Positions 392 through 41,515 of a stretch of DNA of 64,000 nt are shown here, in pieces. The first letter of the stretch is position 1, and each line of letters opens with the position of its first letter. The position numbers and the translations under genes are program-made. The notes below the pieces were generated by a model. It did no database searches and had not been told where the DNA came from. It saw only the letters and a list, made by a program, of their open reading frames with translations. Origin of the DNA: Carpediemonas membranifera BICM (Eukaryota; Protista; Fornicata); the NCBI GenBank assembly GCA_019828565.1, contig JAHDYR010000028.1, positions 62,001 to 126,000 of the forward strand, in the 5' to 3' direction.

Positions 392-2186
392 ATGCGAATA
401 GTCTCCCTTAACAGCCAAGGACACTTAACGGGCAATGAAGACTACAGCGGATCTATAGCGGTAGCGCTTCGCAAGCACACGAGCCCGGACGCCCTCCTCT
501 TGCAGGAAACATTCAGGTACGGCAACTCCGTAGTCCCCTGTTGGGCGGACCTGCAATACGCATGTGCAGGGCACGCCAAACCCATCAAGGCTCGAAAGGG
601 CAAGATTAACCTAGGCGTAGCCACGGTGATCAGCCCACATTCACAGGCAACCTGGGATGTAGGAGTATCTGACGGCACGAACCCCCGAGTTCAAGTTAGC
701 ATCCTCGAAACCTCAAGGGCTATCGCAGTCATCAACATATACGCCCCTCCAAGTGACCGCAGCGCAGCGGAGCTAGACCGCTTCGACCAACAGCTGGAAA
801 ACATCGTCAGAGAGTACCACGGCTTCGAGATAATCATCATGGGGGACTGGAACCGTGACCCGCGGAGCCTGCGCCATGCCACCAGCGCCACACTACAGCG
901 AAACAATCTAGACCTAGTTTTCCCTCGTCTCACACATACATGAGTGGGAATACCACCTCGACGCTGGATTATGCAGCTGTATCTGGGGGGATCACGAGGG
1001 CCAAAGCTAGAGTCATTGACAAAGCTGAGATGGGGCATTGGGGCTCCCCCCATAGGGCAGTGGAGCTAACCTGGGACGAACCGCATTGGAAGAAACAACC
1101 GGCCAAACCCAAGCTGGAAATCCCAGGAACAACCACCTGGAATGTCCTCCCAGAGCGCAACGGGGAAAGGGCAAGGGAATGGCCGCAACCCGATGTGGAG
1201 CTCCATGTAGATACAATCGAGTACCAAATACGGGAACTCTTATCGGTGGGATTTCAAACTTCCGCTAGGAACGTCAGACCAGGGAGATCGCAAAAAAGGA
1301 TCCCGGAGAACGTATGGAAGCAACTCATCCTAGCCCGATGGAACAAAGCGGGGGCCGCGGAAATCAAGCGGACCCTGAACAACGAGCTCCAGAAGTCATG
1401 GAAAAGCTTCAAGGAGGAGTGGACGCAGCAGGTGGAAAACAGCGCAAGGGCAGGGTATAAGACCACCAAGAAGGTCATAGCAAACCAGGTCCACAGGTTC
1501 TGGAACGAGAAACAACACGCAGGGCTACCGGCGATGCTCAGAGGAAAGAGGTCGATCTTAACAAGGGAAAACGAGATAGCTAGGGAGCTGCAGAGGCAAT
1601 ACGCCCAAGTCAGTAGTGGCATAGCACCTAGTTGGGACCAGATCCCGGCGGCCCAAACAACTGATCAACCCCCCACGGAGGAGGAGGTCACGGCCGCCAT
1701 CAAGTCCCTGAAGAAATCATCGGCAGGAGGCCCGGATGGTATCACGGGCGAATGTCTGAGAGACCTCCCCCAGGCGGCCTACAGGGCAATCACATGCCTC
1801 TTCCAGAAAGTATACGAGTCTGGGGAACTACCCACCACGTGGAAGTACGCCTCCATCTCCCCGATACACAAAGTAGGGAAAGATAAGCTACTGCCAGGAT
1901 CCTACCGACCCATCTCACTCACCCCCCTCCTCTACCGAGCATATGGGAAGGTACTCAAATGGAGGCTCAAACCAACAGTTGAGAGGCACACCCCCAGAGA
2001 GCAGATCGGCTTCATGAAGGGAAAGACAGTCATAGACCACATCGCCCTCCTAACCCAACTGCACCAAGAAGGAGACCGGACCAGCGTGCTGCTCGACATT
2101 GCAAAGGCGTACGACACGGTTCCCAGGGACATCCTAGTCAGCAAGCTGATCAATATGGGTGTACACCCCCACCTAGTCAGAGCAGT
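392..2186 (+). pseudogene. L-a ORF2, 5' part (APE endonuclease + N-terminal RT), frameshift near 940
   Basis: ORFs 392..943 and 940..2196; SAGGPDG, YRPISL, QIGF, LDIAKAYDTV motifs. Confidence 0.9.
2170..2186. repeat. 17-bp target-site duplication CACCTAGTCAGAGCAGT (partner 8507-8523)
   Basis: Exact repeat at both junctions; removing the insert restores the RT reading frame. Confidence 0.95.
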
Positions 2187-2656
2187 TCACCAATGATTTC
2201 AGCAAAGTGGAAACACTTCGATCATGGATGGACAAGGACCAACAGGCCTGGCCTATATGGATAGGGCAGTGCCCCATGGAGCTCAGAAGGAGCGGCCTTG
2301 GCCTCCTGTCTGAACATTCAAGGGTTGCTATCAGGGCATACCGCTGGGCGCGAGTGGGAGCTCCACGCCCATACCAAGGAATCAAAGTGTCTTCATGGAA
2401 CGTATGTTTACAAGGAAAAGGAAAACAACCGTCGAGGGCCAGTGCTAGCACCGGCGGCTACATGGTTTTGTCAAGACCACAAGGAAGGAAGGGCAGCACA
2501 AAAGGGAAACAGGGGCCGTCGATAGAGGCTAAAAGGAGACTACGAACAAAGCAACAACAACTACACAGAAAGGCCCCGCTACTCAGAAAAGGGCGACGCA
2601 TTTTTAGGACCGCGCCTTTTTGGAAAGAATGGCCTATATAGTTCGGAGCATGGACA

Positions 2657-5600
2657 ATGGGAGAAACTGGAAGGCCTGGACGGAGACCTCACCCGGATAT
2701 GTACATGTGGCCCGACTTTCGGACCCAAAAATTCCGACCCAGTTTATGGACTAGGAAAAGGGGAGAAATTTTGCACTCAACAATGCAGGTAGAAATACCG
2801 ACAAGGATCAGGGATTCCACGCAGAAGCAGTGGGAGGACATCAGGGAACTACTGGACAGCTTCCTCGCTGAAAGGAACGATTCAAGGACTCTACTTCTTC
2901 GTAGAACAGGCAAGTTTACAGGAAAGTCGCTCAATGCGAACTCCAAAGGACGCAAGGAAGTAATCATGAACGCCAGACGCATCCTCTTCGCAACCGGCGT
3001 CACTGACAACAAGGACATCATCCTCAGGAACCCATGCGGCATCCACGGCCTCCGCGACCTTTTCTACATGCTCACAGAGGCGCTCAACCCCAGAGACGAG
3101 GAAGCAAAGGACATGGCACAGGCACTGGAGCCCAAGACGCTGAAAGCGGGCTTCACTGGCATGGCAAGATGGCCATCTGAGAAGGACATCGAGACGGCGA
3201 TCCTCAAGCCGAAGGAAGATGGGCCCATCGAATGGGATGTAGACAGGGACAGCGTCAAGAAGGCCGAAGGGTCGTTCATACTGGTATCAGGGGCTCATGG
3301 AGACGAGGCCGTAGAAGGCGTGCCTTACGACAAGGTATGGGATCCGGCAAACCAAGGCCCGGTCACCAGAGTGGCCTACGAGCAAGAGGACGGCAAGTAC
3401 AGGGTCATCCTAGAGCTAAGCGACACGTCAGCATGGTCCATCAGCCGCTTCATGGAGGAGGCTAGGGACATCCTCAGGCTTCAGGCACCGGAGGCCCCGG
3501 CCATATGGCAGGCAGCATGGAACAAGTCAGGGATCTACCTGAAGGGCAGAACCAATATCCTGGGCGAAGGGGAGGAGACCCCCCTTAGCAACGAGCCGCC
3601 GTTCCGGAAGGTGAGGCTGGAAGTGCTCAAGGCCACCTCGGTCCGCAGCAATAGGGACGAACATGCCGATCTGGACAGGTCGTCCGCTAGCACGGTCATC
3701 GACGGAGACGAGGAGCAACATGTCAAGGACAAGGAGGAACGACGCCAGCAGGCCACCATGCCCGGCAGAAGAAGCCTCGACGACAGCCTCCTGGAAGTGA
3801 ACAAGGACATGGTCGGGGCCAACCAAGGCAAGATCGACCAGGACGAGGAGGTCGACTCAAACAAGGTCAGCAGCCAGCCGCCGAGGATGCCTAGAAAGGA
3901 CAAGGAGAAACGACTGGTGATCGGAGCCATCGACTTCGAGTGCGCAGACCCTGGCGTCAAGAAGGCAGGGATCCCTGCCATCCCGGTTGAGGGCGGGATC
4001 GTACTCTTTGACCTCAGCACTGGGGACATTCTTGGACACGGGCATGGCCTGTATTACCAGGACATACCGGCAGCAAGCATGGACCAAGCGAGGTACACGG
4101 CATGGGCAGTGACGGGGCTGCCGCCGGCCACCTTCGTGGAGGTCGGGACGGGGCGGCCGCCGATCGAGTATGAGAAGCACATACATACTTTCAGGGACTG
4201 GGCCAACCGCCTGGCGGCTCAGCTGGCAAGGATCGAAAGGTCGGAGGGTTGGAAGATAATCATGTATGCAAAGGGGGTGGAGATGGAAAGCTTCCTCCTC
4301 ACGAACCCCACAAATGGACTGGAGCAAGGAACCAGGGAATTCTTCCAAGCTAGGCTGGTGGACGAGAAGAAGCTACCAGAGATCCTGGAGAACAACGGCA
4401 AGGAGGAGGCTGGCCAAAACCTCAGGGACAACCTCGACAAGGCCAACTACCTGGAAGCAGTAACAACATGGTCAAATGGATGGCAGAACAGGAGCGAGCC
4501 CAAGGGAGTCTGTCCGTACCACAGACACACCGCGGGTTGCTACCACTGTGGGTTGGCGGATACAGTAGTCTTCACAGCCAGGATCAGGGCCCTATGCAAG
4601 GAGAGGATGAGCACCCCAGACGTCTACCACTACATGGGTAAGGCACTCGACAAGACCATGGAAGCAGTCGGGAAGGCGGAGCCGGGCATGGATATCATGG
4701 GAGGCCCGGAATTCGCGACAAGGAGGGACACCTTTGAGATCTTCGGCACGTACCCGATCGGGGACGCAAGGGACGTCAGCAGGGAAGTCGGCGACAGGAT
4801 CCTCGTAGTCCCGGACAACGGACACCGCTTCGGCATCGGCTTCGGGTTCGGGGAGGTTCTGTTGGGCATGAAGGGCATCTTACTGGCCCCCCTCACAATC
4901 ATGGACAACGAAGGTGTACTGGAGAGAAGCCCGCTATGGACCATCATGGAAAGAGCCACGGCTAACCAGCTCCGCATGGTACGCGTCAGGAAGGGCCTAG
5001 GGGCAGCAAGGGAGGAGGACATCATAACCATGGCCATGCTATACGAGTGGTGGCCCTCGAAGGAGGCTACGGCTCATCAAGGAGTCTGGGGCTGCGACGA
5101 CCTAGCAGAGAGCCTCAGGGACTATGAGAAGGTCATAGTCAACGTCAAGGCCCCCAGGAACAGGGGTAGGATCACCCTAGGGGCGAGCTTCATCCCGAGA
5201 GACTGGGGCATGGTCAGGGTCAGCGAGGCTGGGACCATCCTAAGCCGCATGCGCAAGGAAGGGGCCAGACTAGTCTCGGCAGCTATCCCGGACGAGCCCA
5301 GAGCCAACACAGTCAATGTCCCAGGCATCACGTATGTCCCCACCATCGACGGAAAGTCCGAACAGCCATACCAAAGTAGGTTCTTCGACAACGGCCTGGA
5401 GGAAAAGGCGAGGCGGATTAGCACCAGGATGGTGGGCAGGCACTTCGGCCAGGACGCGGATCAAGGACATCACGACCAGCATGGAGACAGGGAAGAGGAC
5501 AGAAGGGTAGGACACGGAGCCGGCGGTAGAGCTGGTGTCAGAGCTGACGACAGAACCGGCGACAGAGCTGGTAACATGAACAGGACCTCGGGTCGTAACC

Positions 5601-6160
5601 ACGGAGTAGACGACAGGGAGAGACAGGACAACACGGGAACGCAGATGAGAGGCTCGTTCAGCGGGAACACCTGGGCCGGTAGAGGCTCAGAGGGAGGCAT
5701 GGACAACAGCAAGGATCACTCTTCCTCCACGACGCTCAAGCGCAAGGAGGGCAGCACGAGTAGGATCATGGACTCGGACAGCGGAAAGAGAAGCAGGCAC
5801 GAAGAGGACATGGACTGGGAGTCTGGAAGCAGACAGGCAACCGGCATGGACTCGGAGAAGCTGCGGCTCCGAAAGCAGTTGGCAGAGGCGCAACAAGAGA
5901 TCTCAGCGCTCAAGGCTGCCCGACTCATGCAAGAGCAAGGCCACGGAAGGTTGGTGCTCTCCGGCGTCGCGACTAAGCCCAGCAAGGAGAAGCCCACGAT
6001 CCCCCGGCACAAGCACAAGAAGGCTAAGAAGGCCAAGCAGATCTCACCCATGGACCTGATGACCCAGTTCATCACGGTAATGCAGAGTCTACAAGGACAG
6101 CAAGTGAGTCAGGCCGAGGACAGCTGCAGCGGCAGTGGGGAGTCCACGGAGGAGGAGTAA
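2657..6160 (+). CDS. 1167-aa ORF1-position protein with a Maelstrom (MAEL)/DEDDh nuclease domain (~3910-4600), low-complexity region and C-terminal coiled coil; may extend upstream through frameshifts (2187-2656)
   Basis: AIDFEC (DxE), IPVEGGIVLFDL, GHGLY, VTGLPP, MYAKG, CPYH...YHCGLAD (CxxH...HC-x3-D) match the protist MAEL motif order. Confidence 0.8.
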   Translation: MGETGRPGRRPHPDMYMWPDFRTQKFRPSLWTRKRGEILHSTMQVEIPTRIRDSTQKQWEDIRELLDSFLAERNDSRTLLLRRTGKFTGKSLNANSKGRKEVIMNARRILFATGVTDNKDIILRNPCGIHGLRDLFYMLTEALNPRDEEAKDMAQALEPKTLKAGFTGMARWPSEKDIETAILKPKEDGPIEWDVDRDSVKKAEGSFILVSGAHGDEAVEGVPYDKVWDPANQGPVTRVAYEQEDGKYRVILELSDTSAWSISRFMEEARDILRLQAPEAPAIWQAAWNKSGIYLKGRTNILGEGEETPLSNEPPFRKVRLEVLKATSVRSNRDEHADLDRSSASTVIDGDEEQHVKDKEERRQQATMPGRRSLDDSLLEVNKDMVGANQGKIDQDEEVDSNKVSSQPPRMPRKDKEKRLVIGAIDFECADPGVKKAGIPAIPVEGGIVLFDLSTGDILGHGHGLYYQDIPAASMDQARYTAWAVTGLPPATFVEVGTGRPPIEYEKHIHTFRDWANRLAAQLARIERSEGWKIIMYAKGVEMESFLLTNPTNGLEQGTREFFQARLVDEKKLPEILENNGKEEAGQNLRDNLDKANYLEAVTTWSNGWQNRSEPKGVCPYHRHTAGCYHCGLADTVVFTARIRALCKERMSTPDVYHYMGKALDKTMEAVGKAEPGMDIMGGPEFATRRDTFEIFGTYPIGDARDVSREVGDRILVVPDNGHRFGIGFGFGEVLLGMKGILLAPLTIMDNEGVLERSPLWTIMERATANQLRMVRVRKGLGAAREEDIITMAMLYEWWPSKEATAHQGVWGCDDLAESLRDYEKVIVNVKAPRNRGRITLGASFIPRDWGMVRVSEAGTILSRMRKEGARLVSAAIPDEPRANTVNVPGITYVPTIDGKSEQPYQSRFFDNGLEEKARRISTRMVGRHFGQDADQGHHDQHGDREEDRRVGHGAGGRAGVRADDRTGDRAGNMNRTSGRNHGVDDRERQDNTGTQMRGSFSGNTWAGRGSEGGMDNSKDHSSSTTLKRKEGSTSRIMDSDSGKRSRHEEDMDWESGSRQATGMDSEKLRLRKQLAEAQQEISALKAARLMQEQGHGRLVLSGVATKPSKEKPTIPRHKHKKAKKAKQISPMDLMTQFITVMQSLQGQQVSQAEDSCSGSGESTEEE

Positions 6161-6491
6161 GGACATGGTAAAGCAGTATTCTTTCAAGGAACAAGCAACA
6201 TTTTCTTTATAATTCACAAGCCCTGGCTCCCACCCAGGGCCCGGCATTAGCTGAAATGCACTGCCGGTAGGCTGTAGCGGCAGCCAAAGGGGGGTCACGT
6301 CATATCGTCCCCCTCCTAAGTACCCTGCCCGAAGAATGGAAGGTCACCAGGTGGTAACAAGGTTGGCCTGACAAGGGTCACCGAGACCGGCATCTAGGCC
6401 CCTTGTTAGGACAAGGATAGCAGGAGAGGAGCGGGAAGCTGGGGCTCCCAAATTCTGGGAATTCGCAGGATAAGGAAACAGGACAAAGGCA

Positions 6492-7610
6492 ATGGTAACC
6501 TACAAGATACTTAGTCTGAACACAGAGGGACACATAGGAAGAGGAAAGGACTTCACGGCGTCTATGGCAACGGCGATTCAGCTAAGGTTGAAGGACATAG
6601 AGGCAGTACTCATACAAGAGACATGGAGAACGGCGAATACGAGGGTTCATTGCTTCATGGACCTTGACTACGCACTAGCAGGGAGGGAGACGGAAGAGGA
6701 CCTGGTCTTAGCCAACGAAAAACGAAAGGCGGATGTCAAAAGTCAGCACCGCATCAACCGACAACTAGGCATAGCAGGCAATGACGAACCTGCGCCAAGA
6801 TGGAAGGGAACAAGGGAAGGCATCGGCACGAGAGTGAGCCCACACGCAACTGCAAAGTGGGACATCGGCATAACGGACAGCCTATCGGGAAGAGTGCAAG
6901 CCAGCATAATGAGAACCGGCAGGGACATACTAGTCATCAACGTGTATGGCCCTCCATCCGGCCACAGCAAGCAGGAGAAGGATGGATTCAGGGACACTAT
7001 ACAGAAGATCATGGACATGAAAGGGAGCATGGAGGCCATAATTATGGGAGACTGGAACATCGACCCAGGCCAGATGGAAAGATCCACCCGGTGGAAGGAT
7101 ATGATGGAGAAGCACAGGCTCAAAGCCATCATACCCAAGTCTGGGACGCTCACATCAGGAACATCAACCCCGGACTTTGCAGTGACAACACCAGGAATCC
7201 AGGGGGCGGAGATTGAGGTGGTAGAGTCTCAGAAGGTCGGGGTATGGGGCTCAGCATACAATGGAATCACACTAGCATGGAAGGAACAACGGTACTATGG
7301 CAGAAGTGAGCGAGACGTGGCTCTGGCCATACCCGAGGTGCACACCTGGCCCATGAAAAAGAAGGAGGGGCCAGTCACAGTCTCAAAGCTGAACAGGATC
7401 AAGAGCTCGGACCAATGGGAAGAGACTATAAGAGCATGCATGGGCGACCCAGTGAACAACAGGGGAGCAAAGGCAAGGGACAAAGTGTTCGGGAACGGAG
7501 TGTGGAGCGAACTCCAGCGAACCCCATGGACAGAAATAGACATTTGGGAAGGCCTCACGGCAGGACTACGGGAACTGGCAAAGGTTTACAACAGCTTCAA
7601 GGTGGAATAG
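6492..7610 (+). CDS. L-b ORF2: APE endonuclease fused in frame to the extreme C-terminus; RT deleted
   Basis: SLNTEG, LIQET, NVYGPP, MGDWN, TPDF. Jumps from ...RTPWTE to IWEGLTAGLRELAKVY, segments ~2.3 kb apart in the homolog at 54078-56867. Confidence 0.85.
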   Translation: MVTYKILSLNTEGHIGRGKDFTASMATAIQLRLKDIEAVLIQETWRTANTRVHCFMDLDYALAGRETEEDLVLANEKRKADVKSQHRINRQLGIAGNDEPAPRWKGTREGIGTRVSPHATAKWDIGITDSLSGRVQASIMRTGRDILVINVYGPPSGHSKQEKDGFRDTIQKIMDMKGSMEAIIMGDWNIDPGQMERSTRWKDMMEKHRLKAIIPKSGTLTSGTSTPDFAVTTPGIQGAEIEVVESQKVGVWGSAYNGITLAWKEQRYYGRSERDVALAIPEVHTWPMKKKEGPVTVSKLNRIKSSDQWEETIRACMGDPVNNRGAKARDKVFGNGVWSELQRTPWTEIDIWEGLTAGLRELAKVYNSFKVE

Positions 7611-7849
7611 AAGCATGTCATGAACCCCTGACTCCAGGACCGGGAAGGGATGGACAAGGAATCAGCCATGGACCACCCTCGCTGGTGCTAAGCTCCTGGG
7701 ATCAGTGAGGAAAGGCCCCACGTATCCCGGTAGCCAGGAACCAAAGCAAGGGAAGGAACGACTGCAAGGAATTAACAGGAAGGACAGACCAGAAATAAGA
7801 AAGAAAGGACATGCAACAAGGACAGAGCAAGGATAAGGTCAAGGAAATC

Positions 7850-8506
7850 CATATTCATATGGTTGCACCACTCGTTGGGACCCCAAGGAAACTGCAGGGA
7901 CTGGCCACGGGGGTCGGAGGGGCACAGGTGCCCCTGCCGCCCTTGTTAACGACATGGGAAACCAAGGACATGTAGTGCAAGCGAAATGTTGTAAGGGGTA
8001 ACAGGACAACCAGGCCTAGTGCCTGGGGCTGCCCTGACCCACGCCACCTAACCGGGGTAGACAGCATGGACTTAGTCACTTTCCCCGCCTTCGGGTAGGC
8101 TTCTTAACAGAGTCGAGGGGGCATGGAATTGGGGAACCGGACAGACGAGAGGGTGCCGTGGCTGAACGGCTCTACAAGGACTGCAGGGAAGCAAGGAGTG
8201 TCATAGTCAAGGTTCTGCAGGACGATCCTGCCTGTCAATGCCCCGAGGACAGACCCCCAGGCTCCCCGGATAGTTGCCGGACTTTCAGGGAGACAGGAAA
8301 GCATATTTGCACGGAGATGGCCGCAGGGCCTCTGGGGCGATTGGAATCGGCTTTCCGCGGAGACAGTAGCACCGAAAGCCCAAGGCAAACGCTGCTGACC
8401 AGTTTGCCACGGGAAATAGGCAGTACCCCGGGGCACTCAGCTCCAAGACAACGGGAAACAAGCTCAGTCCGGGGTCAGAATCCAAGCACCATAAATTTCT
8501 TTCTTT
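7850..8506 (+). other. Conserved structured 3' UTR RNA of the L-b family (homolog 53302-53970, minus strand)
   Basis: Collinear nucleotide conservation between diverged copies, with compensatory stem changes. Confidence 0.7.
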
Positions 8507-9800
8507 CACCTAGTCAGAGCAGTACAAAGCACAATGGAGAGGACCTACATTGCGGTAAGGGGATCCGACCTATGGTCCGAAACGAACCTAGGAGTCAAGC
8601 AAGGTTGCGTGGTCGCCCCCACCCTATTCATACTATTTACGGCCAACTGGATTAGCCAGGCGTCACTCAGAATACAGTACGGCGAGATACCAGACCCGAA
8701 GCTTCCCCCCACCCACCACAGACCCGGGAATGGCATCATAGCAATGTTCGTAGACGATACGAGCATCTCGGCAAAGAAAGAAAATGATGCGGAGTCCCTC
8801 ACCGCCGCAATGGTGGAAGTGATAGTGACACACAAGCTGTGTATCAGCCCAGGAAAGAACATCGTCATAAGTACCAATCCAAATGCGGAAGTGCGAATTC
8901 AAGGGGAGGCCACCCGAGCAGCGGAGTCAGGCCGATACTTGGGACTCTGGATAGCAAGTGGCCCTCATCCGCTCAGCGCATGCATCGCAAAGAAAAGAGA
9001 ACAGTCGAACAAGTACATCGCCCTCGCCCGGAGAGTGGGATGGACTAAAGGCTCCACGCCCGCGGCTGTCTCCGAGTCCATCCTCCGCACCTTCCTATGG
9101 CCAAAGATCGAATTCGGAATCGAAATCTGGGTAGCCGGGGGATGGAAGATGACAGCACGAGACATCGCCACCAAAGGTAGCCGAACAGCCAAGGCGGCCG
9201 CCGAAGTGCTAGCTGCGGAGGCAATGCAAACAATGGCAGGCGGGAGAGCACCCAAGAAACCAAAGATTATCAGAGGGGAGATGATGCTCAGGAGGGAGCT
9301 GAAGAGGGTAGTTGCAACAGCCTCCAACACGCTCCCCTCCGCTAGCAACAGCCACACAACTCGAGGAGCCGCGCTCATCATAAGCAGGAGGTACCCTGGG
9401 CAGGAAATGCTCTGCGACCGTATCCAAAGAATATGCCCGATATGCACACTCGCAGCCGAACGCGAATTGATCAACTACCTCCAACTATACCCCCCCCAGG
9501 CGCAGGCGCTAGTGGCAGTAGCCGGGTGGCTGGAAGACCAACCGCTAGGAACACAAAGTCACATCATAGCGGAGTGCCAGGGCGTCGGCCGCCCAAGTGG
9601 GTGGGAGCAGTGCTGGGAAGCTGCGGCAACACACACCATGGCAAGTAGGCTGCGGCACGGCCCAGATGGGGGAGTGGTATAACTCCAGGGCCATATTGGA
9701 GCTCCACTGGCTACTGCAACAGGAGGATGAAACAGTGAAGGAGGGTCTATTATGCGGGAAAAAGGCCCTCATGAACCTCAGAACAGGCCCAGACCCCTAG
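8507..9800 (+). pseudogene. L-a ORF2, 3' part (RT C-terminus, thumb, CxxC...HxxxxC knuckle)
   Basis: GVKQGCVVAPTLF, FVDD, RYLG, ICPICT...HIIAEC; frameshift near 9680. Confidence 0.9.
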
Positions 9801-15917: not shown

Positions 15918-16090
15918 GCAGAAATATTTCTGTACGGCAATTGCAAGTGCGTAAACGAAGAGTGTTTAATAGGGGGTTTAGACCACATATGCATAAATGG
16001 CCGAAACCAAATATCTGTATCTAATTCTGTATCTATAAATATATCTTGCGATATTGCTATCTATGGCCGTGGTAGGGTATGATAGCAACA
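12670..16090 (-). mobile_element. Ty3/gypsy element A, 3'-truncated; putative 5' LTR ~15931-16090
   Basis: Single gag-pol ORF; LTR-like segment ending TACA that shares a motif with the element C LTR. The LTR outer end is inferred. Confidence 0.85.
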
Positions 16091-17245
16091 CAGCTTCCGA
16101 ACCGGCAACGTACCTACCGTGCCGTGTTCGCTCCCGCGCCAGCCTCTGTCACATCCGACGATGCTACCTCACCGTCTGCTCCTGCTGGAGACTTGCCGCC
16201 TGCGCCCAGCACCGAGGACGCCGGATCCAGCGCCGACGAAGCTGATGACGCCGCCGCTGAGGATGATGAGCCTCACCCTACGCCCGAGGAGACGGAGGCA
16301 CCCGTGCAGGCCGAGGCTACCGCGCCTAACGACCCCGTCGAGGCCGAACCCCAGCTGTCCGAGATGGTCTCCCGTGTGCAGGCCACCGCGATCTCCTACG
16401 TTAGTGCTGACGTTAGAGCAGAGCTACGAGCACTTGTGCGCGGCCGGCTGTCGCGATACGGTCATCTGACCACTAGTGAGCGGTCGCATCACGCTCTTCG
16501 TGACCTGTCCCGTGACGGCTTGGTGTTGCTAGCCATTTCGCGGCACCTTCGCAGTCTCCGGGTCTCAATGACCACCGACAGTTCCGACCCGTCGGATAGC
16601 GAGATTATCGCTGCTTTCCTCGGCCGCCTGGATGCGTCGGTGCCGACCCTCTGTCCCGCCGCGCTCTGCGAGCAGATTTCTCGTATCTCCGGCCTTGGTC
16701 GCACCGTCATGCGCCCCCACCTCGAGCGGGCCATCATGCTCGGCCACGACCCGGCCACATACCAGCTTCTTCTGGTTGGCCAGTGCCAGGACCTGCTCTC
16801 CGACTACGAGGTCCGCTGCTTCGTGCGGCAGTACATTGCGGAGATTCGGTCTTGCCGCGATGGCGCCCACTTCGGCCACTTCTCCCGTTCTCTGCTCGCG
16901 GGCTTTGAGTTTTGGCGCTGCCTCGAGCCGGGCGCATCCCCGGGCTACTCCCCCGGTCTCATGCCTGCCCCGCCCCTGGCCGTTGACGCCAACCGCCCCA
17001 GCGCGGCCTATACGCCTTCACGCGTACTCGGCCATCGTCTGGATGGTCGCACTCTCCGCCTTCTGATGACGTATGAGACGGTTGCCGGCCGCGAGAACGA
17101 CACGTCTTCCATCGTTCAGCCCACCGTCGACATGGCCTCGATGGATAGAGTCAAGCCCTTCTTCGACGACCATCCCGAGTTGCTCGACCACTGCATCCGT
17201 GACGTGGGCCCGAATGGAGAGAGAATCGGTTCTGTTCTGGTGTAA
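16079..17245 (+). CDS. Antisense extra ORF of gypsy element B, function unknown; 5' end probably cut by element A
   Basis: 388-aa ORF converging on the chromodomain stop; a homologous degenerate copy in the same context lies at 27500-28378. Confidence 0.7.
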   Translation: MIATQLPNRQRTYRAVFAPAPASVTSDDATSPSAPAGDLPPAPSTEDAGSSADEADDAAAEDDEPHPTPEETEAPVQAEATAPNDPVEAEPQLSEMVSRVQATAISYVSADVRAELRALVRGRLSRYGHLTTSERSHHALRDLSRDGLVLLAISRHLRSLRVSMTTDSSDPSDSEIIAAFLGRLDASVPTLCPAALCEQISRISGLGRTVMRPHLERAIMLGHDPATYQLLLVGQCQDLLSDYEVRCFVRQYIAEIRSCRDGAHFGHFSRSLLAGFEFWRCLEPGASPGYSPGLMPAPPLAVDANRPSAAYTPSRVLGHRLDGRTLRLLMTYETVAGRENDTSSIVQPTVDMASMDRVKPFFDDHPELLDHCIRDVGPNGERIGSVLV

Positions 17246-38695: not shown

Positions 38696-41515
38696 TCACC
38701 GCGACAGGTGCCGGAGGGTGACGGCAACCAGGGCAACCCAGGCAGTCGCCTTGCTTGCGAGGATTAACAGGCGAGCATCGCGGAAAATGACGTTAATGAC
38801 AAAGATAAAAATCGACATCTTCTCGCCCGTGGCGAAGTTCGTCTTGTCGCTGCCGAACCACCCCTTGTCCTTGTTCCGCAGGTACCAGGCCCAGGTGCGG
38901 ACGTCGCGCGTGTTGGGCTGGGGGTCGTGTGGGCAGTAGCAGCGGCTGCAGATGCCGGGGACAGCCGTCTTGACGTGGCCATAGTCGAACCAGGTCAACC
39001 TCTCACCGTTGATGCACTCCACCGTCTCGAAGAAGTGGTTCCACGACGAAGACACGCGGCTGACCTTATTCTGCCACACCTTCTTGCCGTCGACGCGGTT
39101 GTAGTAACCCGTCATGTGGTGGATCATCGTGTCGTTGTACACCGCAAGCAGCTTGCCGTGGGTCAAATGAATCGGAGCGTCAATTTGATTGAACGTCGAG
39201 CCGACGAAGGGGATGTCGTGAAGCACGTTGATCGCATAACAGCTGCTGACCTCCTGGTCGCTGTACTGCCAGAACTTGCCGGGGAACTGGCAGCAGTTCG
39301 CCTTGTCAGAGGAAAAGTCGATCAAATCCCGGAAAAGATTAGGCCCGAGTCGAGCGAGGTCGTACTTCGTACACCCGCCGTTGATATGCCAGTCGAGCAT
39401 GGCGGTGTCCTTGGTGTACGTGATGGGGCTAGGGTGCTCGAAGAGGGCGTCGGGGTTCTTCATGACGAACATGTCGATGTCAATCATCGCCATGCGCTTG
39501 ACCGGACGGGACCCGATCTTGCTGAGATATGTGTTAATATTGAGCGAAAGAATGCGCTGGAACGCGCCGAAAAAGGCCTCTGACTGCACAGTCAGGAGCT
39601 TGAGAAGTTCATGGGGCATCGCGTCGTCCACGAATACATACTCTACATTGAGCTCGATAAAGCCGTGCATGATGTCGGGGAACTTCGTCAGGTCGTCGTG
39701 GGACGCGATGATGATGCGCGCCTTGGAGTAGAGGCGGAGGCTGAGCACGAAGGTCAGCGTCTGCCCGGCGTACACGTGGTCGGCCTTGGTCAGCCACACG
39801 ACGTACGCGTCGTCGGCGGGGTTCACCGGGACGCGGCGGGTCGTCATCCACTCAGCGGCCTCGAACCGCTCGTCCAGCGTCATATACATAAAGGGGAAGA
39901 AATTCTCGTATGTAACACCGTAAGTCCCCTCGCGGAAAGACCCAAGCGGCGGCACGGGCCTGGTCATGGGCTCGGGCCGACTGGGGCCTGGATAGAGCAT
40001 GGTCTTGCGGGGGCCGAGGGCCGCGCAGTCGAGCGATCCGTCCTCGGCGACGACGTCGGGGGTGAGTAGCGAGAGGTCCTGGCTTGTCAAGAAGGGGAAC
40101 CAGCCGACGTCGAGTTGGCGCACGGCGGCGATGGCGTCTGCCACGGTCGGCTGGGTGGCGAGGGCGTGGGTGACATGGTCGACGTTGGCATCGCCGTTGG
40201 CAATCACGGCGACGTTCAGGCTGCGGTGGAGCTGGAGCCCAGCTCCGTAAGCCTCTTGGGCGTACTGGGAGCGGAATATGACGCCGGGGTCAAGCAGGGC
40301 CAGCTGGAACCAGCCGGGGTGCTCCCTCTGGAGGCCCTTGATGACGGTGACCAGGTCGTCTTCCCGTCGCGCGTGGGTACGCTTGACCATTCGGACGTCG
40401 CCCATCGCGGTGGCCTTTCGGGCGAAGTCGGTGTCGGTGGAGCTGACGAGCACGCGGACCTGCGGGATGCTCGAGGCGAAGGCGTGGACGTCGTAGAGCG
40501 ACATCAGGAAGCGCTTGCAGTCGCGCTCGGCCTCGGGCGTGTCGGCCCACGTGACGAAGATCGCGGCGTTCGTGCTCTGCGTGTCTGCGTAGGCGAGCGA
40601 TGTGTCGGGCGTCGGCGTCATGTCGGTGTATCGGAAGATCTCGACGGGGGTGGTTGTGGTCATCAGGCCGGCGAACGCGAGGGCGGCGAGAAGCGCCACG
40701 GCTTGCATGATGCGGTGACGCCGCACTGCGGGCGAGATGTCCAGCCGCATGTGCACTCTAAGGTACGCAACGGACAGGGAGAGCGTCGAACCGACTGCGA
40801 TGACAAGGACCTCGGTTGTCGGCGCGACTATGGTCATCAGCACGATGGCGCCGGCCAGAGCGTACGGGAAGAGCAGGACCGGCGTGTCAACGGGATCTGC
40901 CTGCGAGATGGTGACGAAAGCCTGTGCGTGCAGCGCAATGGTCGCTGCGAAGGCGACGCCGATTGTCGCGCAGCATAGGAATGAAGCGGACAGGGGAAGC
41001 AGGGTGATGAGACGAGGCAGGTCGAAGACGACTGCAAGAACAAGCGCGCCAGCAGGGGAGCAGGGAAGCATGTTGGATGTGGATCCGCGCGACCACACGA
41101 GAACAGCTACAGCTATTAACAATGCACTCACAATGGCGCCGGCCAATAAGAAAAGAGAAGACCGTTCGACAACAAAAGCGATCATAGAGGCGACGAATGT
41201 CCATGTCACCAGGGACAGAACTGTCAGTGTGAGCGAGGGAACCGACGCGTTCTTCCAGGAAGAGAGAAAAGCAAGGGACCGATTCCGGTGCCGGTGCTTC
41301 AAGGCCACTGTGGCCGCATAAATGAGTGTAAGAGTTGCTAATGCCACAATCTCGGCCTCTATTAGCGCTTCGTCGCGCCATGGAGGCACCAAGTGACGAA
41401 AAATTGCGGCTGCGACAGGAAGTAGCAGGGCTGTAAGGTAAAGAAGTAATACTACACGTATTCTCGTTGTTGGGTTGTGAAAGCGCACCAGCAATGAGTC
41501 CTCGGATCCTGGCAT
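38696..41515 (-). CDS. Multi-pass membrane protein with a C-terminal GT8-like (GT-A) glycosyltransferase domain
   Basis: ~9 hydrophobic segments in the N-terminal part; IDIDMFVMKNPDALF (DxD), INGG, SDQE, IHHMTG. Confidence 0.75.
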   Translation of the reverse strand: MPGSEDSLLVRFHNPTTRIRVVLLLYLTALLLPVAAAIFRHLVPPWRDEALIEAEIVALATLTLIYAATVALKHRHRNRSLAFLSSWKNASVPSLTLTVLSLVTWTFVASMIAFVVERSSLFLLAGAIVSALLIAVAVLVWSRGSTSNMLPCSPAGALVLAVVFDLPRLITLLPLSASFLCCATIGVAFAATIALHAQAFVTISQADPVDTPVLLFPYALAGAIVLMTIVAPTTEVLVIAVGSTLSLSVAYLRVHMRLDISPAVRRHRIMQAVALLAALAFAGLMTTTTPVEIFRYTDMTPTPDTSLAYADTQSTNAAIFVTWADTPEAERDCKRFLMSLYDVHAFASSIPQVRVLVSSTDTDFARKATAMGDVRMVKRTHARREDDLVTVIKGLQREHPGWFQLALLDPGVIFRSQYAQEAYGAGLQLHRSLNVAVIANGDANVDHVTHALATQPTVADAIAAVRQLDVGWFPFLTSQDLSLLTPDVVAEDGSLDCAALGPRKTMLYPGPSRPEPMTRPVPPLGSFREGTYGVTYENFFPFMYMTLDERFEAAEWMTTRRVPVNPADDAYVVWLTKADHVYAGQTLTFVLSLRLYSKARIIIASHDDLTKFPDIMHGFIELNVEYVFVDDAMPHELLKLLTVQSEAFFGAFQRILSLNINTYLSKIGSRPVKRMAMIDIDMFVMKNPDALFEHPSPITYTKDTAMLDWHINGGCTKYDLARLGPNLFRDLIDFSSDKANCCQFPGKFWQYSDQEVSSCYAINVLHDIPFVGSTFNQIDAPIHLTHGKLLAVYNDTMIHHMTGYYNRVDGKKVWQNKVSRVSSSWNHFFETVECINGERLTWFDYGHVKTAVPGICSRCYCPHDPQPNTRDVRTWAWYLRNKDKGWFGSDKTNFATGEKMSIFIFVINVIFRDARLLILASKATAWVALVAVTLRHLSR

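Follow-up and report, generated by a model that had tools for sequence, protein, structure and literature searches.

ORF1 proteins of long interspersed nuclear elements (LINEs; ORF, open reading frame) are RNA chaperones, some of which carry an esterase or a PHD domain. Here we describe a LINE of the fornicate protist Carpediemonas membranifera BICM whose ORF1 encodes a predicted DEDDh 3'-5' exonuclease resembling Maelstrom (MAEL). It lies in a stretch of 64,000 nucleotides (hereafter, the window; contig JAHDYR010000028.1, positions 62,001 to 126,000, forward strand; G000:C27:62001-126000 in our numbering) of the 24.2-Mb, 69-contig assembly GCA_019828565.1. The nearest precedent is found in bdelloid rotifers, whose long terminal repeat (LTR) retrotransposons and Athena/Terminon elements carry DEDDy exonucleases as ORF3s, for which a role in RNA 3'-end processing has been proposed (Rodriguez et al. 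2017, PMC5408684). Like the domain described here, these are extra DnaQ-like 3'-5' exonucleases with intact catalytic residues, including a change from DEDD to DEED (PMC5408684). However, they are DEDDy (RNase D-like) enzymes encoded by a separate ORF3 in LTR or Penelope-like elements, whereas the C. membranifera domain is of the DEDDh type, bears a Glu-Cys-His-Cys (ECHC) zinc pattern and is located inside ORF1 of a LINE with an apurinic/apyrimidinic endonuclease (APE). The SGNH esterase ORF1s of CR1, L2 and RTEX elements likewise combine an enzyme domain with a coiled coil (PMC5408684), although that enzyme is a lipid esterase and the one described here a predicted nuclease. Literature searches found no report of a MAEL or DEDDh domain in any LINE ORF1, in agreement with a first-pass annotation of the window, made from its letters alone, which knew of none in that position.

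The combination of DEDDh and ECHC residues is known from a small set of proteins. In Bombyx MAEL, a structural zinc is held by E137, C290, H293 and C302, and the position of the last catalytic Asp is occupied by R306 (Chen et al. 2015, PMC4408791). This protein binds single-stranded RNA without cleaving it, Mg/Mn exoribonuclease activity is reported for an Entamoeba MAEL protein that has DEDD as well as ECHC, and the Lassa virus nucleoprotein (NP) also has both motifs (PMC4408791). RIF4 of Trypanosoma brucei (TbRIF4) is a 3'-5' exonuclease of duplex small interfering RNA (siRNA) (PMC3359990). The trypanosome member was noted by Zhang et al. (2008), whose alignment presents Entamoeba MAEL with DFE, LELG, [C]PYH-x8-[C]GLQD and YH[C]ALSD (PMC2628886); the text copy of this alignment (Additional file 1) is noisy, and the highlighted Cys columns are dropped in it.

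The unit in the window is a recently active APE-type LINE of C. membranifera, in a copy that has lost its reverse transcriptase (RT) (Table 1). A full-length copy elsewhere in the genome (L028:425-9070) has an ORF2 of 1,147 aa with APE (Exo_endo_phos_2) followed by RT (RVT_1) and is flanked by a target site duplication (TSD) of 16 bp. Apart from a single in-frame deletion of 2,325 bp, the window copy is 99.7% identical to it and, having kept only the APE in its ORF2, is a non-autonomous derivative that needs mobilization in trans. This order of APE and RT, the TSDs, the simple-repeat tail and the dispersal of copies whose flanks differ from one to the next are those of an APE-type LINE; the ORF2 homologue search returned too few named matches to place it in a clade. 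The genome contains at least 59 matches to ORF1 and 113 to the APE. Copies are 99.5 to 99.9% identical, and the small number of substitutions (0.1 to 0.5%) indicates that the family is very young. The exact 2,325-bp deletion is common to at least 10 copies, and in eight further copies a second variant was found, in which the APE match stops at residue 294 within an open frame of 305 aa. As these deletions recur in many copies, RT-less derivatives that keep ORF1 and APE have themselves spread. One public contig switches to the full-length form precisely at the deletion junction.

Copies with the 2,325-bp deletion include G000:C1:592500, C1:761224, C1:1319061, C8:1012833, C43:23082, C52:57611, C68:63935 and C27:51645. 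A second copy of the RT-deleted form is found on the opposite strand, upstream of the window element at a distance of about 5 kb (L003, G000:C27:51614-58096). Single-base indels recur among ORF1 copies (L002-L012, L028-L030 and L035) at or near ORF1 nucleotides 928, 2231/2232, 2294, 2494, 2506, 2548 and 3480. They look like homopolymer errors of long reads in unpolishable repeats, which fit them better than real mutations, so that intact copies are probably undercounted, and many "broken" ORF1s, including a class with three TAG and one TAA, may be artifacts. The ratio of nonsynonymous to synonymous substitution rates (dN/dS) between the window copy and L002 was 0.18 on approximately 18 changes, which is uninformative at 0.1 to 0.5% divergence, while the diverged families are saturated.

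The first-pass annotation had delimited a 6.3-kb unit by a perfect 17-bp TSD and a LINE tail, and both were recovered. The direct repeat CACCTAGTCAGAGCAGT flanks the unit, and in silico excision of 2187-8523 leaves a single open frame of 801 aa that spans the junction and belongs to the RT of another LINE, the host LINE, whose interrupted ORFs extend over 940-2196 and 8534-9682. Since excision rejoins the RT frame, the unit is a genuine insertion in the RT gene of that element. Its 3' end is a (TTTC)n run of different length among copies, i.e., a simple-repeat tail of the LINE type and not a poly(A). At the other end, the terminus TCACCAATG... is common to all copies, and each is directly preceded by [C/G]AGT. 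In the 5' junctions of 17 copies, CAGT precedes (2183-2186 in the window), with GAGT in the one full-length copy (L028/L025). Either the real 5' end could be located 3 to 4 nt upstream, in which case the TSD would measure about 13 nt, or the shared tetranucleotide is microhomology used in second-strand joining; TSD lengths shift by no more than 4 nt.

ORF1 is uninterrupted for 1,167 aa, as first annotated, and every motif listed then (IDFE / IPVEGG / TGLP / YAKG / CPYH...YHCGLAD) could be located: IDFE at residue 425, PVEGG at 443, TGLPP at 486, YAKG at 537, CPYH at 619 and YHCGLAD at 629. The DEDDh set is intact (D426, E428, E544, H630 and D635), and each residue is conserved and falls on the expected secondary-structure element. 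The predicted zinc tetrad (E445, C619, H622 and C631) is intact as well, with the C-x2-H-x8-C-x3-D spacing of Maelstrom. The column of E445 contains Glu in every aligned sequence that covers it, and the C, H, C and D of the downstream motif are invariant in 10 of 10 sequences. Because the motifs are retained in homologues down to 24 to 30% identity, they cannot be attributed to chance; those kept to 24% are DxE, E445, H463-G-L (β3), [TH]G[LC]PP, AKGxxME544 and CP[YFH]H-x8-C-x3-D.

The same DEDDh residues and ECHC pattern are present in the protist MAEL nucleases, namely Entamoeba EHI_192630 ("EhMael") and TbRIF4. The likeness to the former is almost letter for letter (DFE, the conserved E, CPYH-x8-C and YH[C]GLxD / YH[C]ALSD), and both CPYH...YHCGLAD of ORF1 and YHCALSD of a C. 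membranifera LINE family in which the nuclease is fused to the APE (see below) are nearly the same strings as in Entamoeba. The resemblance to protist Maelstrom in motif order, already pointed out in the first-pass annotation, holds, as DFE, CPYH and YHCGLxD match Entamoeba MAEL in the alignment of PMC2628886. Metazoan Maelstrom (PDB 5AF0, 4YBG and 9NHC) shows identical spacing of the zinc ligands (E...C-x2-H-x8-C), but it has lost DEDD, contains an HMG box and acts in the Piwi-interacting RNA (piRNA) pathway, whereas in the transposon-borne LINE domain the active site is retained and an HMG box is missing. The exonuclease (ExoN) of arenavirus NP (Lassa, LCMV and Junin) likewise unites DEDDh and ECHC, in a protein with which a genetic parasite packages its RNA, and has a near-identical HCALxDC motif, although it belongs to an RNA-virus protein and the LINE domain does not match Pfam Arena_ncap_C (PF17290). 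In Lassa, the spacer from H to C is longer, with ca. 19 residues (C506/H509/C529). When a 49-column motif profile was compared to PDB, two of the four matches were arenavirus nucleoproteins aligned at HCALLDC, with E values of 0.45 to 0.75 that are not significant alone. The ECHC tetrad expected of a MAEL domain is thus found at the level of sequence, and these patterns make it likely that the domain belongs to the ECHC-bearing subgroup of DEDDh proteins (MAEL, protist MAEL/RIF4 and arenavirus NP ExoN). Given that the active site and zinc pattern are intact and that EhMael and TbRIF4 are active, the domain is, by analogy, most likely a Mg/Mn-dependent 3'-5' exoribonuclease.

An alignment-based AlphaFold2 (AF2) model of ORF1 residues 405 to 675 (predicted local distance difference test [pLDDT] of 88 and predicted template modeling score [pTM] of 0.86) has a DnaQ-like order of strands and helices, with the β1-β2-β3-αA-β4-αB-β5-αC succession of the RNase H-like DEDDh fold. 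Foldseek retrieved DEDDh exonucleases exclusively with this model; the highest template modeling (TM) scores by query were those of Maelstrom chains (0.43 to 0.46), and the lowest E values those of 3'hExo. In an exhaustive structure search, MAEL chains came first, with the most residues aligned (179 to 198) and reaching model residue 262. Beyond residue 257, only MAEL and arenavirus NP rows align, while the others, with one exception, end by 252. The best match in the ESM Atlas was a PF13017 (Maelstrom) cluster (TM of 0.58 over 210 residues, other exonuclease clusters giving 0.51 to 0.54), and language-model neighbors were DEDDh exonucleases, including the C-terminal domain of arenavirus NP (0.90). 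The DEDDh fold of the model can be considered secure. The predicted structure leans to MAEL, whose alignments are the longest, without separating the domain from other DEDDh families, with which its fold scores tie.

Two further domains of ORF1, one N-terminal and one C-terminal, are conserved in homologues. No part of ORF1 matched a Pfam family, and no RRM, zinc knuckle, PHD or esterase was detected. The N-terminal domain had no match in Pfam or in the ESM Atlas. The C-terminal domain belongs to no known family, and its AF2 model was unusable (pLDDT of 38); it contains invariant P, N and P residues and a W-G motif (FIPRDWG), the latter at 211 to 215 residues from the HC motif, a distance that is constant in C. 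membranifera and in the second assembly described below. Further downstream, an apparently disordered stretch precedes a probable coiled coil, at the position of which homologues give weak matches to coiled-coil families. The ORF1 protein (ORF1p) would be a large multidomain component of the LINE ribonucleoprotein (RNP), with the N-terminal domain, exonuclease, C-terminal domain, disordered stretch, coiled coil and basic tail in that order.

Searched with a profile of the exonuclease domain, the 24-Mb genome gave at least 152 matches. They fall into several score classes, all of which are multicopy, and every inspected match was LINE-linked. The LINE families at L031-L033 have ORF2s 64 to 68% identical to that of the window family and upstream ORF1 homologues at 41 to 53%. 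The linkage of a MAEL-type ORF1 to a downstream APE ORF2, which the first-pass annotation had proposed to look for elsewhere, is therefore present both in full-length copies and in diverged families. In the fused family, the nuclease domain and APE are encoded in one frame (in L044 together with the start of the RT), with open frames of up to 1,748 aa. The nuclease is the only part of ORF1 that it recognizably shares; no recognizable homologues of the N- and C-terminal domains were found in it. Loci of this family are L043:2415-7496, L044:2869-8115, L045:2420-6292 and L046:3287-7495 (minus strand).

Among 1.84 billion representative proteins searched exhaustively with HMMER, there were only 17 relatives, and the 10 that were looked up all came from C. 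membranifera or from the GCA_002919055.1 / SRR4018424 data. The more distant relatives (24 to 36% identity over the domain) were found in assembly GCA_002919055.1 and run SRR4018424. In the former, an APE-RT ORF2 with 26% identity to that of the window family lies downstream of one ORF1 homologue. The best match of this assembly in the C. membranifera genome is just 34% identical, which indicates that GCA_002919055.1 is another species. A profile search with the domain alignment against 5.8 billion proteins returned C. membranifera proteins only. Within a group of LINE lineages, the domain is thus integral and old, a module that predates the split of the lineages present in two organisms. A host gene trapped between repeats is ruled out by the copy number and the constant linkage to ORF2. 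The module is not a feature of all LINEs of this genome, since the 434-aa ORF1 of the host LINE (L036:5360-6664; G000:C27:60359-61663, just upstream of the window) does not have the exonuclease domain; this ORF1 had no convincing Pfam family.

These data bear on the origin of the domain, which the first-pass annotation explained by the capture of a silencing-pathway nuclease. Domains of this type are otherwise known from host genes (MAEL, EhMael and TbRIF4), as would be expected if the element had recently taken up a host Maelstrom or RNA interference (RNAi) gene, either as an accidental passenger or as a mobile defense gene. However, protist MAELs are host genes in single or few copies, whereas the C. 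membranifera domain resides in a LINE ORF1 or polyprotein, and all of its inspected matches are LINE-borne. It is common to LINE families down to 26% ORF2 identity, the second assembly included, and its catalytic residues are conserved throughout. As a six-frame search of the genome with PF13017 found no match (a weak negative), no host MAEL donor is visible. A recent capture is therefore very improbable, and because many diverged LINE lineages and a second assembly share the domain, any capture was ancient. The description of MAEL as a host piRNA-silencing RNase, given in the same annotation, does not extend to protists in its piRNA part, which is a metazoan feature.

Altogether, we favor, with a probability of roughly 0.6, the reading of this unit as a young APE LINE with an ECHC-subgroup DEDDh exonuclease in its ORF1, an old module that would serve the element in cis. 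While target-primed reverse transcription proceeds in the LINE RNP, the exonuclease would shorten the 3' end of a nonpolyadenylated (read-through) transcript as far as the (CUUU)n tail, degrade the RNA template in the 3'-5' direction in the wake of the RT, or do both. The fusion of the domain to APE-RT in one family speaks for such a role, as do the lack of RNase H in these LINEs and of a poly(A) tail; RNase H (PF00075) had 3 genomic matches, compared to more than 100 LINE copies. Taken by itself, this replicative function is tentative and somewhat short of an even chance.

Several observations weigh against this reading. The Exo II residue is Glu (E544) and not Asp, which together with the lack of a significant PF13017 match sets the LINE domain apart from protist MAEL. 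Searches of 13 domain members against Pfam up to an E value of 10 returned no relevant family, RNase_T (PF00929) included; Pfam Maelstrom, RNase_T and Arena_ncap_C had no match on ORF1, its three parts or nine homologues, and nothing significant was retrieved by phmmer and profile searches of PDB sequences. In the strict sense of the Pfam Maelstrom family, the domain is thus not a member, and the Maelstrom identity given in the first-pass annotation stands for the DEDDh fold and the ECHC pattern at MAEL spacing but not for PF13017. Since there is no Pfam match and the fold scores tie, it is the motifs, together with how far the structural alignment extends, that support assignment to the Maelstrom type. 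In one public run, the family appears only as short, low-depth, DNA-like contigs, so that this run lends no RNA support. With regard to the role in cis, the host could supply RNase H. Finally, the characterized relatives act on single-stranded RNA (EhMael, PMC4408791) or, in silencing and immunity, on duplex RNA (TbRIF4, PMC3359990; arenavirus NP), and by analogy these substrates of active relatives point at least equally to counter-silencing.

In such a counter-silencing scheme, which the first-pass annotation had put first, ORF1p would coat the LINE RNA and destroy sense-antisense duplexes, or duplex siRNAs before Argonaute loading, in a manner resembling arenavirus NP ExoN, ERI-1 or an unregulated TbRIF4, and host RNAi would be blunted. 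Duplex RNA is the substrate of the nearest active relatives that have been characterized, among them TbRIF4, which degrades siRNA duplexes and functions together with AGO1 (PMC3359990); arenavirus ExoN takes part in the suppression of innate immune signaling (PMC7968707). ORF1p and NP are both RNA-packaging proteins, arenavirus NP is matched at the HCALxDC motif, and the host carries two Piwi-domain (Argonaute) genes (G000:C7:87108-88037 and G000:C65:23790-24737, both on the minus strand, with open frames of 823 and 796 aa). Read-through of inverted neighboring copies, such as the nested pair 5 kb apart formed by L003 and the window element, could produce long duplex RNA. Against these arguments, six-frame genome searches with PF00636 found no RNase III/Dicer domain, a weak negative (as for PF00929) that might be due to the first-look filter of the search, and the APE-RT fusion in a single polyprotein of one family is more easily reconciled with a role at the site of integration. 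Besides, we know of no LINE-encoded silencing suppressor. On balance, we regard counter-silencing as unlikely, if a contender to be taken seriously. The APE-RT fusion would also suit an action on DNA, with the exonuclease clearing mismatches or flaps from 3' ends at the nicked target in preparation for RT priming, or proofreading the cDNA; however, all characterized members of the ECHC subgroup are RNA enzymes or RNA binders, which makes this improbable. A catalytically silent, purely RNA-binding module like metazoan Maelstrom would be in keeping with the RNA-binding nature of ORF1 proteins in general. It would also find a parallel in Bombyx MAEL, which binds single-stranded RNA but does not cleave it (PMC4408791). 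Nevertheless, metazoan MAEL has lost DEDD, while all five residues (D, E, E, H and D) persist here across 24 to 50% identity as in active EhMael, and we give this explanation equally little credence. Compared with all of these, the exonuclease serving its own element in cis remains our preferred interpretation.

The coordinates of the element and its insertion site are compiled in Table 1. The surrounding region is a transposon nest with chromoviruses, a Tc1-like element and several LINEs. ORFs of 388 and 939 aa (16079-17245 and 38696-41515 of the window), located beside or inside chromovirus copies, had no Pfam family.

Table 1. Coordinates of the LINE, its ORF1 domains and motifs, and its insertion site (positions in the window)
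Feature	Position	Strand	Evidence or remark
Host LINE ORF2, first half of RT, interrupted	940..2186	+	RVT_1 positions 4-99 (Pfam)
TSD, left copy (CACCTAGTCAGAGCAGT)	2170..2186	+	Repeat comparison, in silico excision
RT-deleted LINE copy, 6,320 bp, of a family of ~8.6 kb	2187..8506	+	99.7% identity to L028:425-9070 apart from one deletion
5' untranslated region (UTR)	2187..2656	+	5' terminus TCACCAATG... present in all copies
ORF1, 1,167 aa, intact	2657..6160	+	Open frame; at least 59 genomic matches
ORF1 N-terminal conserved domain (aa 30-340)	2744..3676	+	Kept in P0002, P0019 and others
DEDDh / Maelstrom-type exonuclease domain, predicted (aa 410-673)	3884..4675	+	AF2 pLDDT 88; matches to DEDDh and MAEL folds
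Exo I motif D426-x-E428 (IDFE), strand β1	3932..3940	+	
E445, predicted zinc ligand E of ECHC, on β2	3989..3991	+	Corresponds to Bombyx E137
Exo II acidic residue E544 (AKGxxME), helix after β4	4286..4288	+	
C619-P-Y-H622-x8-C631-x3-D635 with H630: predicted zinc C, H, C and Exo III H-x4-D	4511..4561	+	Spacing invariant, 12 sequences
Conserved C-terminal domain of ORF1 (aa 674-940) with FIPRDWG at aa 845	4676..5476	+	Length and motif kept in both assemblies
Probable coiled coil (aa ~1067-1098), then basic tail	5855..5950	+	Inferred from sequence
Inter-ORF spacer	6161..6491	+	
Truncated ORF2, 372 aa: APE and final ~22 aa of ORF2	6492..7610	+	Pfam Exo_endo_phos_2
Junction of the in-frame 2,325-bp RT deletion	7539..7539	+	Comparison with full-length copy
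3' UTR, (TTTC)n tail at 8496-8506	7611..8506	+	
TSD, right copy	8507..8523	+	Repeat comparison, in silico excision
Host LINE ORF2, second half of RT	8524..9682	+	RVT_1 positions 113-204 (Pfam); frame rejoined on excision

A conserved and apparently active 3'-5' exonuclease in ORF1 represents a new enzymatic activity for the toolkit of non-LTR retrotransposons and raises a question that can be assayed, namely, why a LINE needs an exoribonuclease. Among the other members of the small subgroup to which the domain belongs, Maelstrom acts in the piRNA pathway, RIF4 in trypanosome RNAi and the arenavirus nuclease in immune evasion, so that the finding bears on the origin of the ECHC-DEDDh proteins and on the possibility that transposons counter RNA silencing by enzymatic means. 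For biochemistry, the LINEs of C. membranifera also offer an active-type MAEL domain in more than 100 naturally occurring sequence variants. A bolder proposal, which we hold to be less likely still than counter-silencing in general, is that ORF1p is a transposon "nucleoprotein" whose exonuclease degrades duplex LINE RNA or siRNAs and would be the first RNA-silencing suppressor encoded by a LINE. If this were true, the ECHC-DEDDh lineage (MAEL, TbRIF4 and arenavirus NP ExoN) would have passed between genetic parasites and the silencing pathways of their hosts, and it might be the host MAEL-type factors that arose, by domestication, from such retroelement genes and not vice versa.

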